64,000 nt of DNA. Origin: Takakia lepidozioides. Taxonomy: Eukaryota > Plantae > Bryophyta. This document shows positions 40,031 to 48,816 of the stretch, piece after piece (positions within the stretch are counted from its first letter, which is position 1; each line of letters opens with the position of its first letter). The position numbers and the translations under genes are program-made. Location: positions 17,980,001 to 18,044,000 of the forward strand of contig CM060733.1 in NCBI GenBank assembly GCA_030704615.1, read 5' to 3'. Below the pieces are notes generated by a model. That model was not told the origin of the DNA. It saw only the letters and a program-made list of their open reading frames with translations, and did no database searches.

Positions 40031-41972
40031 GTATTTGGACTTAGATGACATTGGACCTTTGGGCCAATGGCAGAGGCTACCCTAGAGGTTGCACTTGGGC
40101 CTGGACATAGGAGATACACTTGCATACATAGGAGATTGCACTTGTGCTTAGATGACACTTGACACTTGGGCCTTGACATAGGAGACGCACTTGAATGCAT
40201 AGGAGATTGCACTTGGGCATACACATGACCCTGGACACTTGGGCCAACGGCAGTGGCTACCCTAGGGCCTAGAGGTTGCACTTGGGCCTCGACATAAGAG
40301 ACACACTTGGATACATAGGAAATTGCACTGGGGCTTAGATGACAGTGGACAATTGGGGCTCTACATGGGAGATGCCCTTGGATACATGAATAAAAGGTTG
40401 CGCTTGGATACATAGGAAATTACACTTGGTCTTAGAATCCAATTCTTCACATATGGGCCAAACGGCATAGGCTACACTAGAGGTCGCACTTGGGCCTCGA
40501 CATAGGAGACGCAATGGGATACATAGAATCTCACACTTGGGCTTAGATGACACTGGACACTTGGGCCAACGGCACAAGCTAGAGGTCGCGTTTGGGCCTC
40601 GCCATAGGAGATGCATTAGGATACATAGGGGATTGCACTTGGACTTAGATGCCACTTGACACTTGGGCCAACGGCACATGCTACCCTAATCAATATATAA
40701 AGCAAGACGTTTGTTTTGTTTTGTCACGTGGAGATGTCCCAAACCGGAAGGCCCAACGCATTGCTTGGTACCATTGGGAAGCCCTCGACGAGGATGGGTG
40801 CATAAGCTTGGTCTCATGATTTTTGGACCTGCGGTGTGGGAGATGGGGAAATCCAAGTACTTTTGGTCACTGGAAATTCCCGAAAAATAGCAAATTGGGC
40901 ATTCATGGGACAACTAGGGTAGCTTGTGCCGTTGGCCCAAGTGTCTAGTGTCATCTAAGTCCCAAGTGCAATCCGCTATGTATCCAAGTGCGTCTCATAT
41001 GTCGAGGCCCATGTGTGAAGAATTGAAATCTAAGTCCAAGTGCAATCCCCTGTGTATCCAAGTGCGTCTCCTATGACGAGGCCCATGTGTGAAGAATTGA
41101 AATCTAGGCCCAAGTGCAATCTCCTATGTATCCAAGTGTTTCTCCTACGTAGAGGCCCAAGTACGACCTCTAGTGTCCAATGTTATCTAGAGAACCAAGC
41201 CCGTGCACCCCTCCTCGTCGTCATCTAAGTCCAAGTGCATGAATATATTAAGAAGTCCAATGTCATCTATGTCATCTATGTCATCTAAGTCTAATCATTT
41301 TTTTTCCATAGAGCCTAGGACCGGATTTGAACCGGAGACCTTTCCCTTGATATCTCTCATGTGGAGGCTCCAACCATTGTCCCATGAATGCCCACTTTGC
41401 TATTTTTCATGAATTTCCAGCGACCAAAAGTACTTAAAATTCCTATGTCAATGCCCATGTGTGAAGAATTGAAATCTAAGCCCAAGTGCAATTTCTTATG
41501 TATCCAAGTAGGTCTCCTATGTCAAGGCCCAAATGCGATCTCTAGTGTAGCCTTTGCCGTTAGCCCATGTGTAAAGAATTGAAATCTAAGCCCAAGTGAA
41601 ATCTTCTATTCATGTATCCAAGTGCAATCCCATATCTAATCATTGTCCAACAAGTACTTGAAATGCGTTTTAGCCATATCTAATGAATTTTTTTCCACAT
41701 TGCCTACGACCAGTTGCGAACCGGAGACCTTTCCTTTGATATCTCTCCCATCGAGGCTCGTCCCATGAATGCCCACTTTGCCATTTTTGCTATCTTTTGT
41801 GAATTTCCAGCGACCAAAAGTACTTGGAATTCCGTATCTCCCACACCACAGGTCGAACGATCATGAGACCACCTCTCCTCGTCGAGGGCTTTCCAACGGT
41901 ACAAGCATCAGTGTTGGCCCCGTGGTTTGGGACATCTTGACGCTACAAAACAAAACAAAACAAACAAACGTC
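40031..41972. repeat. Composite repeat family arranged as an imperfect inverted (fold-back) structure; continues at 45392-45572
   Basis: Subrepeats CACTTGGGCC..GACATAGGAG..CTTAGATGACAC in 40031-40688 recur reverse-complemented in 40915-41630. Segment 40690-40912 is inverted relative to 41761-41972. Confidence 0.85.
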
Positions 41973-44900
41973 AGAGAGAGAGAGAGAGAAGACTCCGGCC
42001 AAAGCCGGCGTAACTAAGAGCCACTTCGCCTTGCGGCTACTGCACCCTTTCGGGGGTGGGTTCTATAAAAAGAAAAGGTGTCATGTGAGACACCAAGTGA
42101 CCGTAGAAAGTAGAGGAGTCTATGGTACCCCTGGGTACCCAGGGGTACCCTAGGAGACCTAGGATGCGTTTGAAGTGCCGGATTCTAGTTGGCGTTTGTT
42201 GGTGATAATAGCTGTGAGTGAACGGAGTGTCGTGAGATGAATTGCTTTGAAGCATTTGTGGATGTGAAGAGTGGGAAATTTGAAGTTATCATATGTCATT
42301 GATACTGGCATTATGAATGCCGCCTCGAGTACCGACGGTGATGACGGTTATTGAGCCAGTTTTCCAGCCATACCGTCAGATTGCAAAGATAAGCGGGGCA
42401 TATTTTGACGTTTTTCTAAAATCCAGTCATTGGGATAACAATCGTGGCAAAACGTGAAATTCAATGAAATGAATGGTAAATTGTGGGGATGGTGAGGTAG
42501 GGGGTGGGGTGTTAATGTGTAGGCCTTGTACAAGGAGTATGTCCGGGCAAAGCCTAGCAGGGCATAAACAAGGTGATCGGGTACATATGCATGGTAGCAG
42601 CCAGGATGACACAGTATGGTCAGGTAACCGACTTTGGTAGGTGCCAGCGTTTATGAGCAAGAACCATTTGGTTTCAGCACGATTTAGAAAGAGCTTATGG
42701 ACATGCCAGACTGTCTGGTTGTGTCGCGTGATATGAAGGCCATGTATGATCGGGTGCATACATTGGCTGAGGAGATGTGACCAGGTGTCACGAGCTTGGT
42801 GAGTGGTTGAACATAATGGGCAGTATGGGGATGGGAATATATGCGGCCAGAAGATGTGTTTGCGTTGGTAACCCATGTATTGGGTGTATCTGAATTTGTG
42901 TTTGTCAAATTTGTGCGTCAGTGGTAGCTTTAGTTAGCCAGAAATGATTTGAGAGTTTATGGTGCAATACATTTGATTGAGTCCATTTTTGGATGTGTAC
43001 TTTGGTGTGGCTGATGGAGGCTGCGTCTTGTTTATTTGCTTCTCTGGTCAAAGTGATCAAAAGGTTTCGGACTGGTCTGGGTACAGGGGGTCCAGGACTG
43101 GGTGTATAAACCAGAAGGGGTAGGTATGGGCGATGTGGATAAGGTCGGTTGTGGGTACGATTGTGGGTTGAGAGACGCCAAGTTGAGCGAGTAGGTCTGC
43201 TTCCTCATTACCATGAATGCCAGTGTGCGAGCAAACTTTGAGTAAATGGATTGGATGGTTTTTGGAAATGGCCATTTGGACAATGGCGGAATGAGGTTGC
43301 GGTCGGGGTGATGATGATGCGGGAGATGTGGTTTCAAATAAAAAATAGAGAGGTGAGGCTATCAGTGAAGATATAGTATGGGGGGGGGGGGGGTCAAGTA
43401 GAGAGAGAACGTTGTGGATGGCCATGAGCTCAGCCCTTAGAATGGTGGCAGGGCCAGGGAGTCGGAGGGCAACACCACGACCGCTGTTGGCGTGATAAAT
43501 TCCATATCCTGCATTAGGTTTGGTGAGGGATCCATCAGTGTTACAGTGTGAGTTTGCCGGGGGATACTTGAGGGTGGTGTTTTATTGATATAGTGAGGGG
43601 ATTGGGGGAAGGGGTATTGTTGGTATTACCTGGGGGGGGGCGGCGGCTATGCAATGCCCCATGCTTTGTTTGTTTTGATCTGGGGAAGTATGGTGGTTGT
43701 GTGGGTGTGGAGGGGTGTAGCTGGGTAATGGATGGTGGCCTTCATTTTATGAGTTATGATTAGCAACTTGTTCTAGCTGGTGGAAAAAAAATGTCGGTAT
43801 GTTTGTATGAAGGGGGTTTTGGACATGTAGAATCAAGTTAGGGTAGGTTCTTTCATTTTGAGATACTTGGGAAGATGGGAGGTATGAACATACTTAAGCT
43901 GATTTGGCTCAATTGTGGCGAGTAGATTGTTCCCTTCGGGGAGTCGTATGAGAGGGTGGGGGGTGCTAGGTGTGTTTTGCTGTGTAAAGATGATGACTGT
44001 GAAGGCAAGAGGAGAGGAGTGTGATGGAATTTTTCCCATTGGAGAGCTTTATAAGCGAGGGGGCCATAGGGGGGGTGGGCAAAGCCCCTACCCTCCCAGG
44101 TATGCTGGGTAGTATTGTCGGTGGCTCCAAAGAGACAATCCCTATGGTGCGGGCTGGAAAATGTGTGCAAGTCCATAGGACATGTCAGTGGATTGGAGTA
44201 ATATGAGTGAGTAAGCTGGAATATATTAATAAGTAAGGCGAGAATATCTTGGGGTATGGCATGGTATGCGCATGCCATTTCCAGTCGGATGAGGGATCAT
44301 GGCTTCTTGGGGGGGGGGGGGGGGGGGTATTTGAGGTAGTGGTCTACGAGCCAATATAATTCGGTAGTGAAGTCTTGTTTTGGGGGTTGTAAAGATTGTG
44401 GATATGAGTTTGCAACAGAATACTTCTCCCACAACCATGTTAATATTAGGAATGAGTCCAATGAAGCGGCGTATTGAGCGTATATATTGGAAAGGCGGGG
44501 GCCCATGTGAATTAATGGTTGGTCATGCTTGACATCTTTGTCGGGGTTACACTCAGTTATGCAGATGTGCACGTTAGGGGCAGAGATCGGCTGGTGAATG
44601 TATCCACTATCTGTAGGTTGGGCGGGGGTGGTGTGTTGTTGGTGAATGTGTGTAAAGTAGTCCGTGTTAGTATGTTTATGGAAGGAGGTGAGAAGGGCAA
44701 GATTGTGTTCGGGGTCACAATCATCATATGGGCCAAATAGGTCATCTTCTATCTGCCATGTGTTGTCTTGTGGAGAGTAACCAACCCATTTACACTGGTA
44801 GTATGTATCAATACAGGTGGGCACCGAAGGCATCGATTGACGTTTGGGTTTTGACTCATAATATGGCTTCAATGATGTATGCATTATTATTGTCATCATT

Positions 44901-45391
44901 GTGTGGATAAGGTGGGGGGGACGTTGTGGTGAGTGGTTGGGAGTGGGTGGGGGAGCCTTGCATATTAGACAAGGGGTTGAATGGCATATCCATGTTGTGG
45001 TCAGGTTCGGTATGTTGTGTGTTAGGTAGATGAGAGGGGGGGTTGGTTCTGTGATAGTGGGGGTATTGGCGGCATATGCCGTTTTAAGTGTTGGTAGATG
45101 GAGGTAATAGGGGTAGATCGGTACTTGGGGAGCAAATCTTGAACCATATGGGGATAGTAGAGATATGGGATATCACATTGGAGGGTGCAGGCTGCTAAGG
45201 GATGATAGAAGAGGGGTCGGAGATGGTGTAGGTATCGACTGGTTTTGGTCGTAGATCGGGAGAATTTAAGAGTGAATTCGCTTGGTTTTAAAAGTCGATG
45301 GCCGGAGGCGGTGGTAAGTTGGGTGAGGGGTGGTAATATGATGTTCTTTGAAATAGGGGAGGATGGGGATCTTTTGTTTTGGATGAGAAAC
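41973..45391 (-). mobile_element. 5'-truncated Dualen/RandI-like non-LTR retrotransposon (chromodomain, MTase-like, RNase H, CCHC, RLE)
   Basis: TSD ACAAACGTC at 41964-41972 and 45392-45400, and a (TC)n tail. RNase H motifs TDGS (~43535), RAELMAI and SHTGIHGNEEADLLA; CPLC..HLLSQC; RHN; PDIL..IEF. Many frameshifts, and the RT domain is absent. Confidence 0.85.
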
Positions 45392-46715
45392 ACAAACGTC
45401 TTAATTCATATATTGATGGTGACATGAGAGATACAAAAGGAAAGGTCTCCGCTTCAAATATGGTCGTAGGCTCTCTAAAAAAAATGATTAGATATGGCTT
45501 GCTTCGTATATCGATGCACTTGGACTTAGATGACACTCGACATTTGGGCCAAAGGCATGTCAGGCTACCCTAATAATTGTTATGCTTAGGTTCTTCCAAA
45601 TATTGGTGGCTCATTAGTCATTCCACCCAACTTGAGGTTACTAAATAACACTAAACAAATAAAAACGTTTTGCCCCTCTCCCCCACTTTTTTTCCCCCAA
45701 TAATTATTACTAAAATTCATCATGGCTACAATCCCAAATTTATTTAAAACAAATTCCCCTGTAATTCTCTTCCATGTCATATAAATTCGGTGTAGAGGCA
45801 TATCGCGTCATAATGGAATACAGCCAAGTGCGTTGGAGATGTAATTTCGAGCAGAAAATTTAGCCTTCAATACGGAGAGCATGACATAATAATAATAAAA
45901 GTTGGCATAAAACCTCGTCGGTTTGTCGTTATATCAACAGTCTTTACAGCGCATGTAATACGCAAGGGGACTACAGACCTCACCCGTGGATCAGTAGTAA
46001 CTCGCACGCCACTTATTTACAGTACATCCCTCAAGTCATGTCGTGTGGATCAGCACAACACCGGATCAGCACAACACCAAGCAACCCTTCCGCCCCAAGT
46101 AAACCACTGTCTTCCAAAATCCTTCCATCTCCTTGTCTGCAGTCTGCACGTAGACCTGGGCCCACTCCTCCCGCACCTTGAAATCACCCACCCTACTCGA
46201 CCCTCGATCCTCCTGCACCCTCTGGTCCTTGCCTGAGCTCCCACTTTGGGCTATACCTTGCCAAAATCACCTCCGTTCTAGAACTCCCTAGCATTCCTGG
46301 ATTCCATGTGGGCCCGCATGCAATAGCCACTTTGAAGGGGCATGCAATAGCCATGTGGGCCCAATGCAAATAGCCACCCTAGTTGAGCTGAGTCAGCTTG
46401 CTAGATGTTGCATGCAATAGCCATGTGCGCCCCACATGCAATAGCCACTTTGAAGGGGCATGCAATGGCCACGTGGGCCCAATGCACGCTGCCACTTCTA
46501 TTCAGACAGCCGCTTAAGCGTCGGCTTGCCTCTAGCTGATTTGGTTTTTTGGGCGTTTGGGGTACATATAGGGGTTTAAAAAAAATAAAAATCCACTAGG
46601 CGGACGAAAAAAAAGTTGTTCTATGTCACAATTTGTACGCTATTCCTTGGATAAAGTAAGTGATACATTTCTAAGTGTTATAGTTTGACATCTTGATCTT
46701 TCTATTCTTTCGGCA

Positions 46716-46775: not shown

Positions 46776-48816
46776 AATGTACAGCCCAATACCATTGGGA
46801 GGGGGGAGGAAATGACAGATGAGATCAGAGTCTGAAGCGCATACAGAGAGCTCTAGAACAAGCCAAGTGGCAATCTATAGATGGAGTTAGTAAAGATTGT
46901 TATACGTATGGTCTTTTTCTGCAACAGATATGCAGTCACGATTCTTTGCACCCGTTTTGTTACCCTCAAGGCAATGCTCGATGCATGTTGGAATCGAAAT
47001 CGTTTTCGATCCAGTGTTTAGTAGAAGGTACTTGCTCATATGCATAGCATGCAGTAGTCATCTGGGAGACTAATGGAAAGATGAATGATGTGTGATAGAT
47101 GGATTTGAGAGAGCAGGTAGAGAAATTATGCAAGACAATACAAGCTGTAGAGCAAATTCGATAGGTGGCTATGAAATGCACTTCCTAGAACAACATTATA
47201 GCATTGTGAACATTACAAGTCATTGAAATATGCTGTCAAGTATTGTCCTTCCCTTTGCCACCATTGTCGGATGTCTAGAGCTGGTGTGCTAGTATTTCTG
47301 CAGGTTGGGATATTTCAGCTTTTACTATATGACTCTGGACAACGATGTTGGTTGGGACGAAAAAATCTCTATTGACATATGACCCCTCATGAATTAAATT
47401 GTTTGACTAGATCAGAAAGAAGATTCAACAATAATTGCTCCTAGAAAAGGAGGTTTATGTGTTGAAGGTGACGATTCATCTTTTGTTCGGCAACTACCAT
47501 TTCAATATGGGGTTAGTATGGGGTGCTAGGGCTTGTGACACTAATCCGCGATCCCTCTGTAGGATGTGCACGCCTCTGGATATTGGGCACCACCTTCATG
47601 TGTTCTTTCGCTATCACCTTGTTCATTCACGATTAATCGTGAATATTGTATTTGTCAGCTGCAAAGTCTAGTGGCTTCTCAATGTTTGTTGCCAGAGTTT
47701 CAGGTCATTTGTGTACAGAACTATGGCCTTGCGCTTGCCCATAGTCACCTTGTAATTGCCCCGATAAACTCTGCCCAGACATATATATAGTGCTCATATC
47801 CGAGTTACCCATGGTTTTGGGGCTTTAGGAGGCGTAGGAAGAGAAAGATGATTTAAAGATTTTTCCGTGTGATGAACAGCTGAGACAGAAACATCTTCTA
47901 AGGGGTCCTTGAATAGCACAAGACATAGATGTCATAAATTGTTCTAGATCTTTAGGACCATAACATGTCAGGATCCCATCCTACGTTTTTATGTACTTAC
48001 TTTTGTAAGAAGTGGAAATGTGCCAAAGGAACTGCAGACCTACAAATCCACTGGAGGCCGTTTTTGTAGGAGATCTCTACTGTTTGATATCCATGATTTA
48101 AGGGTTTGGGTACTAGTAAGGATCAGAATTTGAAATAGTAATTTCGCAGAAAGTGTTGAGCTACTACAAAGGGATGCGCTTGAAATGGCTTCAAAGATTC
48201 TCTAACTTTGAATTCAAGACGGGTTCAAGACCAAGAGGAGTTCATATGCACACCATGTCCTTCATTGCAAGATTGTCTTAAGATAAAAAATATATAACAG
48301 AATTTCTTAAAAGTACATGAGCATCTACAGCATTCAAGTGGCCGGCACCAAACCTCCCCTTGAAGCTTCAGATACAGATTTCAAACAAATCATTTTCAGC
48401 AGTGTAAGAGCTGCATTACAAATATCTTTCAGAGAAAGAAGACCATGCTACAGTCTTCAGAACAACAGATCACTTCAGCTTTCAGCTCCTCCGCATGTCA
48501 GGGATGGGCCCTATAACTAACTGTATATGTGCGGGGTTGGCGGTGTTCAAATCTTTATTTGATGGTATTAAATAACAATGAGAGATCGGATGGCTGTAGG
48601 ATAAAGCGCCAGGCGGGGTTTGAGAGTGTGGGTGTGCTGCATTTTGATGTTTCGTGCATATAGCCTGTTCGTAGATCACGGATCAGAGATTAGCGTAGAT
48701 TACATGGCAGTACGTAGATGAATTCAATGTAACGTATGATCTTTCCTGAAGATCGATAGGATCCCGGCCGTGGTATCACCTCAGAGGTAGCGGATACATT
48801 TGCACAAGATTAGAGC

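Follow-up and report, generated by a model that had tools for sequence, protein, structure and literature searches.

A 5′-truncated non-LTR retrotransposon in Takakia lepidozioides, probably of the Dualen/RandI type, with a chromodomain and a PCIF1-like domain

Introduction

In a 64,000-nucleotide stretch of the Takakia lepidozioides genome (assembly GCA_030704615.1, contig CM060733.1, positions 17,980,001 to 18,044,000; hereafter the window, in whose coordinates all positions are given), the segment 41973-45391 appears to encode an unusual series of protein modules: a chromodomain, a methyltransferase-like (MT-like) domain, an RNase H, a CCHC zinc knuckle and a restriction-like endonuclease (RLE). 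This locus raises the question of whether these modules belong to a single retroelement, and, if so, what kind of retroelement would combine a chromatin reader with a methyltransferase fold. The analyses presented here indicate that the segment is very likely a dead, 5′-truncated insertion of a very long, dual-endonuclease family of retrotransposons without long terminal repeats (non-LTR), of the Dualen/RandI type, a group with which the work of Kojima and Fujiwara in 2005 is reportedly associated.

Results

The insertion and its boundaries

The 9-bp sequence ACAAACGTC is present directly outside both ends of the element, at 41964-41972 (left copy) and 45392-45400 (right copy), and these copies define the exact boundaries of one insertion at 41973-45391, the sense strand of which is the minus strand. 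An initial annotation of the locus had reported matching duplications at both ends, and these are borne out as a target-site duplication (TSD). A paralogue of the host repeat (the reverse complement of 40660-40790) carries the 9-mer once, followed by TTgcTTtATATATTGAT, and thus represents the empty site. A query made of the joined flanks aligned through the junction to the surrounding-repeat paralogue at 40689-40911, and a three-way alignment demonstrated that the paralogue holds the 9-mer once and then the same sequence that resumes past 45400, as the initial annotation had proposed for the interrupted host repeat. Unitigs from four sequencing runs of the same organism spanned the 45391/45392 junction without differences; all four runs derive from one sample, which is possibly the source of the assembly, and the bridging covers this one junction. 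The surroundings of the insertion consist of tandem repeats with periods of 71-187 bp. Satellite-like arrays (periods of 71, 74, 102 and 187 bp) occupy 40081-41159 and the insertion flanks, and the summed word depth of these repeats in the organism's reads reaches tens of thousands, far over that of neighbouring sequence.

The GC skew of the plus strand is +0.33 to +0.42 within 41973-45391, compared to approximately 0 elsewhere, indicating that the coding sense lies on the minus strand, where the element is 34% C and 13% G. At its 3′ end the element carries a microsatellite tail at 41973-41992, which reads (TC)n on the sense strand and (AG)n on the plus strand, preceded by a 3′ untranslated region (UTR) at 41993-42170 (minus strand), given that homology to the open reading frames (ORFs) of relatives stops at ~42171. 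The 3′ UTR is predicted to be structured (RNA fold of -80.7 kcal/mol, z = -4.1 versus shuffles), and it includes a perfect 26-nt palindrome at ~42120-42153, GGTACCCCTGGGTACCCAGGGGTACC on the sense strand, which gave the strongest predicted hairpin and was also seen as an inverted self-match. Simple-repeat tails other than poly(A) are on record for RandI elements, as (ATT)n and (CTATTT)n (PMC3747384). Altogether, the 9-bp target duplication, the 3′ (TC)n tail, the structured 3′ UTR and the random 5′ truncation show the marks of target-primed reverse transcription.

Many read-derived contigs from the same sample are 95-99% identical to the element, and the summed word depth of the element is well over that of the adjacent, apparently unique sequence at 45616-45762 (word depth is not copy number); these observations suggest a multi-copy family in this organism. 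A host gene or an exapted domain was also considered as the source of the modules and was rejected, given the TSD, the tail, the signs of multiple copies and the broken reading frames. At 47646-47792 on the plus strand, there is another short piece of a related RLE (the WLLPC...CPxxLCPDI region), with 38% protein identity to the main copy (E 8e-6); it probably represents what is left, at the 3′ end, of a different insertion that was also heavily truncated.

The window copy is a dead fossil

When intact relatives were aligned to the segment by tblastn, homology spanned from ~44971 down to ~42171, and within the aligned blocks the reading frame was interrupted by at least seven in-frame stops and shifted at least four times. 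Long C runs are located at several of the frame breaks, among them C19 at 44309-44327 and C14 at 43380-43393. Paralogous read-derived contigs differ from the window copy by single-base indels at 42402, 43289, 43768 and 43835, which indicates that at least some of the frame breaks are specific to this copy. The 5′ end of the element, at 44883-45391 on the minus strand (homology to relatives from ~44971), is the truncated remnant of a linker that in relatives lies downstream of the reverse transcriptase (RT) thumb. The first ~420 bp of this end contained no RT motif, and the ORF at 45022-45393 gave no Pfam match; the copy thus breaks off inside the linker that follows the RT thumb, upstream of the chromodomain, and is without an RT. 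Taken together, these data demonstrate that the window copy is a dead, 5′-truncated, inert fossil that by itself has no functional consequence. When the window ORFs were scanned against Pfam by themselves, all matches were below threshold, and the identification of the modules relied on relatives.

Five modules in one order, in the window and in relatives

Minus-strand translation, Pfam and alignment with relatives together confirmed that the five modules lie on one strand in the order chromodomain, PCIF1/CAPAM-like methyltransferase fold, RNase H, CCHC and RLE. With the ORF that holds the CCHC and RLE as the query, an exhaustive search retrieved 324 homologues, nearly all of them short fragments, and a profile search with the alignment A2 retrieved nine short contigs. 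The better sampled part of the family is a sister lineage that is 30-40% identical to the window copy across the shared domains.

The chromodomain (44738-44882, minus strand, with its first strand in another frame) scored 24.2 bits against Pfam Chromo (PF00385; cut-off 25.1, E 3.2e-5) in the window and 41.4 bits (E 1.4e-10) in the relative L003, and the profile of this region matched the CDYL2 chromodomain (E 2e-4, PDB sequence search) along with other chromodomains. By inspection, the window copy has all three aromatic residues of the cage, namely the Y of AYIIEAI and the W and Y of KWVGY, and L003 has them as well. In the sister lineage the cage has degenerated to H, W and T, and a Pfam Chromo match was obtained for only 4 of 15 members. 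Between the chromodomain and the MT-like domain is a linker (44387-44737, minus strand) with conserved ECNPDKD and WLW motifs (alignment A3), which ends in the C19 run, with a stop at 44299.

RNase H is encoded at 43177-43572 on the minus strand (Pfam RNase_H E 2.8e-4; tblastn with the relatives P0001, P0003 and P0153), and its residues D, E, D, H and D are all readable, although the frame changes at the C14 run, which divides them between two frames. The same family was matched at E ~2e-14 directly upstream of the CCHC in P0001 and P0003. Further downstream, the ORF at 42430-42876, which was aligned with 12 relatives, contains a C-x2-C-x11-H-x4-C zinc knuckle (42760-42822, minus strand) followed by RHN, PD (P111-D112) and a conserved E (E139, in IEF). 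The core and C-terminal region of the RLE, assigned to the PD-(D/E)xK type, span 42171-42726 on the minus strand, the former limit being where the alignment with P0001 and P0003 ends; the frame shifts near 42430-42480, and stops interrupt it at 42429, 42378 and 42350. In the PDB, the best match to the CCHC/RLE profile, a weak one, was the CCHC/RHN region of R2Bm (8gh6, residues 938-979).

The initial annotation had placed all five modules in one retroelement, and the same order in uninterrupted ORFs of relatives agrees with this. In the long homologues P0001 and P0003, PCIF1_WW, RNase_H, CCHC and RLE are followed by a C-terminal extension, and P0151 carries Chromo with PCIF1_WW. Upstream, an uninterrupted 660-aa ORF in L004 holds the RT thumb, the chromodomain and the MT-like domain; an uninterrupted 839-aa ORF in P0153 runs from the thumb through RNase H; and P0159/L013 joins RT, chromodomain and PCIF1_WW. 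The chromodomain and the MT-like domain thus belong to the ORF, in which they are conserved and under selection, and are no accident of the window copy.

Upstream modules in the sister lineage

An apurinic/apyrimidinic-like endonuclease (APE) was detected in the sister lineage, with a match to Exo_endo_phos_2 (E 6e-9) in L015 and with WNAG, QETK and SDH motifs in L014, the APE of which is 70% identical to that of L015. In L013, APE and RT are located within one ORF. Tiling of the contigs yielded an architecture of ORF1 followed by an ORF2 with a 2A-like peptide, APE, RT, linker, chromodomain, MT-like domain, RNase H, CCHC and RLE, with overlaps that are 62-84% identical and a composite length of >13 kb. 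The initial annotation had called for a search for APE and RT upstream of the modules; both were found in these relatives, whereas the window copy itself is truncated and has no RT.

Several further features of the relatives were observed. ORF1 is giant, reaching 1659 aa in L014 (L014:1927-6903; also L015:2772-4013); its N-terminal part is of low complexity, whereas the ~400 residues at the C-terminus show conservation from one contig to another and matched no Pfam family. A 2A-like ribosome-skipping motif, D(I/V)ExNPGP, is located ~210 residues upstream of APE (L014:7103-9982, residues 214-221; L015:4009-5922). Strand asymmetry extends to the whole family (41973-45391; L013, L014, L015), with sense strands of 30-43% C and 4-15% G and proteins rich in Pro, Thr, His and Gln. 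In L005:1-220, a copy represented by the start of its CCHC and RLE gives way directly to a second, 5′-truncated copy, so that two members of one family are nested or in tandem. Neighbouring sequence on the relatives' contigs carries plant transposon domains (DUF4216/4218, Transposase_21), indicating that these contigs are plant DNA inside metagenome assemblies. L015 was discarded from ~11500 onward, where a GC content of ~70% and bacterial purC/purS/purQ-like genes identify a chimeric long-read metagenome assembly. The contigs of P0178, P0004 and P0002, which were checked for full-length copies and for the upstream part of the window lineage, held only 5′-truncated or end-of-contig copies.

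The PCIF1-like domain is under selection and lacks the catalytic Asn

The MT-like domain (43839-44386, minus strand, with a frame change at ~44030) matched Pfam PCIF1_WW (PF12237) with 13.6 bits (E 0.049) in the window copy alone; however, 37 of 40 relatives matched this family, with a best E of 4.2e-10 and, in L001, 33.2 bits versus a cut-off of 31.1. A first structure prediction, made for chromodomain, linker and MT-like domain from 15 sequences, was too poor to be used (predicted local distance difference test score, pLDDT, of 55.6). An AlphaFold (AF2) model of the MT-like domain from a 40-sequence alignment reached a pLDDT of 68 and a predicted template modelling score (pTM) of 0.67, and the top three Foldseek matches of this model were human and zebrafish CAPAM (E ~6e-4, probability 0.99-1.0, TMq 0.43-0.49), followed by generic class I methyltransferases. 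A shape search of the ESM Atlas returned phage Dam-type clusters (TM 0.50/0.61), a phage PCIF1_WW cluster and an arthropod retroelement cluster; a feature search of the same atlas gave scores of 0.80-0.82, which is the level of chance. The PDB sequence search with a profile of chromodomain plus MT-like domain found chromodomains only and no PCIF1. No WW family, the N-terminal domain through which PCIF1/CAPAM binds the Pol II CTD, was matched in Pfam scans of the P0001, P0003 and P0153-type ORFs and the A3 members, and none of 40 members matched Dam (PF05869), even at E up to 10.

Among unsaturated pairs (dS 0.1-1.3), the ratio of nonsynonymous to synonymous substitution rates (dN/dS) of the MT-like domain was 0.09-0.19, and by this measure the domain is under purifying selection. 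Its near-invariant blocks are THSYYSSPLTCP, SPHxRD and FGSxG. PCIF1/CAPAM has SPL(T/N), FGSxG and xPPx blocks in common with the domain, and these are similarly spaced. The equivalent of the catalytic NPPF motif reads [H/F/Y]-P-[T/P]-[D/N/Y] in the family and HPPY in the window; in 39 sequences the four columns hold H (15), F (13) or Y (8), then P (36), then T (22) or P (11), and finally D (22), N (7) or Y (7). Neither Asn nor Asp occupies the first position in any of the 39 sequences.

The initial annotation had raised the possibility of a methyl writer, and the absence of the catalytic Asn from all 39 sequences weakens that proposal. Because this Asn is missing, a canonical methyl writer is doubtful, and the MT-like domain is most likely an adenine-, cap- or nucleic-acid-binding module or a scaffold and not a canonical N6-adenine methyl writer; retained methyltransferase activity is judged unlikely from the same residues. 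The alternative, in which the domain is an active methyltransferase that uses a His/Phe/Tyr-for-Asn pocket to modify adenine in the element's capped RNA, RNA:DNA hybrid or cDNA, is unlikely. In its favour, purifying selection is strong, the THSYYSSPLTCP, SPHxRD and FGSxG blocks flank the cofactor/substrate site in PCIF1-type enzymes, the nearest folds are all N6-adenine methyltransferases, and retrotransposons with an adenine methyltransferase and chromodomains are documented (bioRxiv 10.64898/2026.05.21.726589). However, besides the first motif position, the fourth is D, N or Y and not a conserved aromatic residue, and the DAM domains of retrotransposons keep Asn-Pro-Pro almost universally (bioRxiv 10.64898/2026.05.21.726589), whereas the present family gave no Pfam Dam match at all.

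Probable assignment to the Dualen/RandI type

According to published work, no elements other than Dualen have both APE and RLE (PMC9977147); in Dualen the order is APE-RT-RNase H-CCHC-RLE with lineage-specific accessories, for instance the SET methyltransferase and C48 peptidase of a cryptophyte element (PMC5029228). On domain content and order, the family described here is probably of the Dualen/RandI type. The proposal in the initial annotation of a land-plant lineage of this clade stands as far as the RNase H-CCHC-RLE order and the upstream APE and RT of relatives are concerned; its weaker side is that APE and RT come from sister-lineage metagenome contigs only. A very unlikely alternative is that the family is a separate RLE lineage, near R2 or in an unnamed clade, that gained APE and RNase H independently. 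Among solved structures, the RT of the sister lineage matched R2 (E 4e-34) better than it did L1 ORF2p (E 3e-18), and the accessory domains and size (>13 kb, with an ORF1 of 1659 aa) are unlike those of published Chlamydomonas elements. Nevertheless, the series APE-RT-RNase H-CCHC-RLE is the exact published Dualen configuration, RNase H-CCHC-RLE is likewise seen in two RLE homologues, P0093 and P0135, and Dualen is reported to branch between the RLE and APE clades (PMC4640811), a position which an R2-nearer RT fits and from which such similarity is expected. That the chromodomain and MT-like stretch is foreign to the long interspersed nuclear element (LINE), as a nested insertion or assembly chimera, is close to refuted, since the frame breaks of the window copy at both ends of the stretch, at long C runs, and the chimeric downstream part of L015 are outweighed by the same order in single uninterrupted ORFs from independent contigs, different samples and two lineages ~40% identical, by a uniformly C-rich, G-poor composition across the modules and by the lack of internal TSDs.

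Discussion

The reading of this locus as a remnant of a Dualen/RandI-type family has to be weighed against several points. APE through RLE is not found on any single contig, so that the full architecture is a tiling at 62-84% identity, and the contigs with APE and RT belong to the sister lineage (~30-40% identical) and to metagenome assemblies, not to this genome. The APE call in L014 rests on its motifs and its 70% identity to L015, because there was no Pfam APE match for L014 and the PDB sequence search with its APE-bearing ORF was empty. The RLE was assigned from motifs together with a weak PDB match (E 0.21). For the MT-like domain, the model is of moderate confidence (pLDDT 68), and VIA-align placed CAPAM (Z 7.0-7.4) level with KsgA/Dim1, M.TaqI, METTL5 and CamA (Z 7-8.3), a range that the tool rates common, with matched enzymes that are all adenine-N6 methyltransferases. 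The placement of HPPY on NPPF depends on the coordinates of the Pfam profile and on the PCIF1 sequence. Lastly, targeting by the chromodomain is drawn from one insertion site, in a satellite-like repeat, and from the analogy with chromoviruses.

Similar to Dualen/RandI elements such as Dualen-4b_cRei of Chlamydomonas and Dualen-1_GCr of a cryptophyte, the family combines an APE, detected in the sister lineage, with a C-terminal CCHC/RLE, places RNase H between RT and CCHC, and has a non-A simple-repeat 3′ tail, very long ORFs and lineage-specific accessory domains. Dissimilar from them, the window family has a land-plant host and a chromodomain plus a PCIF1-like fold between the RT linker and RNase H, and its relatives have a 2A-like peptide ahead of APE. 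The target duplications of active Dualen-4b_cRei are hundreds of bp in length (PMC9977147), in contrast to the 9-bp TSD in the window. PCIF1/CAPAM (PDB 6IRV, 6IRW, 6IRX), a cap-specific adenosine N6-methyltransferase, provided the best Pfam family and the best Foldseek matches for the MT-like domain; however, no WW or helical domain was detected in the window family, NPPF is replaced by [H/F/Y]P[T/P][D/N/Y], and the domain sits inside a retrotransposon ORF2.

The nearest precedent is found in a 2026 preprint on DIRS and LTR retrotransposons that carry DAM and chromodomains, including the "EpiLTRs" (bioRxiv 10.64898/2026.05.21.726589). As in the family described here, the polyprotein of those elements joins an adenine-methyltransferase fold to a chromodomain, and the predicted MT-like fold also resembles phage Dam-type clusters and an arthropod retroelement cluster (ESM Atlas). 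The DIRS and Ty3-like LTR elements have Pfam Dam (PF05869) with Asn-Pro-Pro, whereas the window family is a LINE with PCIF1_WW from which the Asn has been lost. The preprint does not mention Dualen, PCIF1 or land plants (bioRxiv 10.64898/2026.05.21.726589). In the literature searched, there was no report of Dualen from land plants, of a PCIF1-type domain in a retrotransposon or of a LINE with a chromodomain and a methyltransferase; no matching report was found that would contradict the initial annotation's view of the architecture as undescribed. To our knowledge, an internal chromodomain has not been described in any other LINE.

A mechanism of insertion can be proposed from these domains. 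APE and/or RLE would nick the target, RT would use the nick for priming, starting at the tail and 3′ UTR, and RNase H would clear the RNA template. The chromodomain, with its aromatic cage intact in the window lineage, may tether the ribonucleoprotein to methyl-lysine histone tails, and we infer that it targets methylated histones; through such tethering, new copies would land in heterochromatic repeats in a chromovirus-like manner. Chromoviruses (Ty3/gypsy LTR elements with an integrase chromodomain) likewise encode a chromodomain with an aromatic cage, presumed to guide insertion to marked chromatin, but their insertion is mediated by integrase, whereas the chromodomain of the window family lies inside a LINE ORF2, between RT and RNase H, and would act in target-primed reverse transcription. 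Because the PCIF1-like domain is under purifying selection, it may be required for propagation. In a bolder version of this model, the family would possess an epigenetic toolkit, with a working methyl-lysine reader that steers insertion to heterochromatin and an active, PCIF1-derived writer with a rebuilt pocket that places N6-methyladenine on capped RNA or on the RNA:DNA intermediate. This version is quite unlikely; if true, it would represent the first methyl-writing LINE and the first use in a retroelement of a cap N6,2′-O-dimethyladenosine (m6Am)-type enzyme.

In the literature consulted, the hosts described for Dualen are green algae and cryptophytes, and a land-plant lineage would widen this range. 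If the chromodomain guides insertion, the family would be the LINE counterpart of chromovirus targeting. For the DAM domains of retrotransposons, activity assays were negative, and the question of enzyme or binder was left open (bioRxiv 10.64898/2026.05.21.726589). A PCIF1-like domain that is selected and yet is without the catalytic Asn provides a natural test of whether the adenine-methyltransferase folds of retroelements are enzymes or binding modules.

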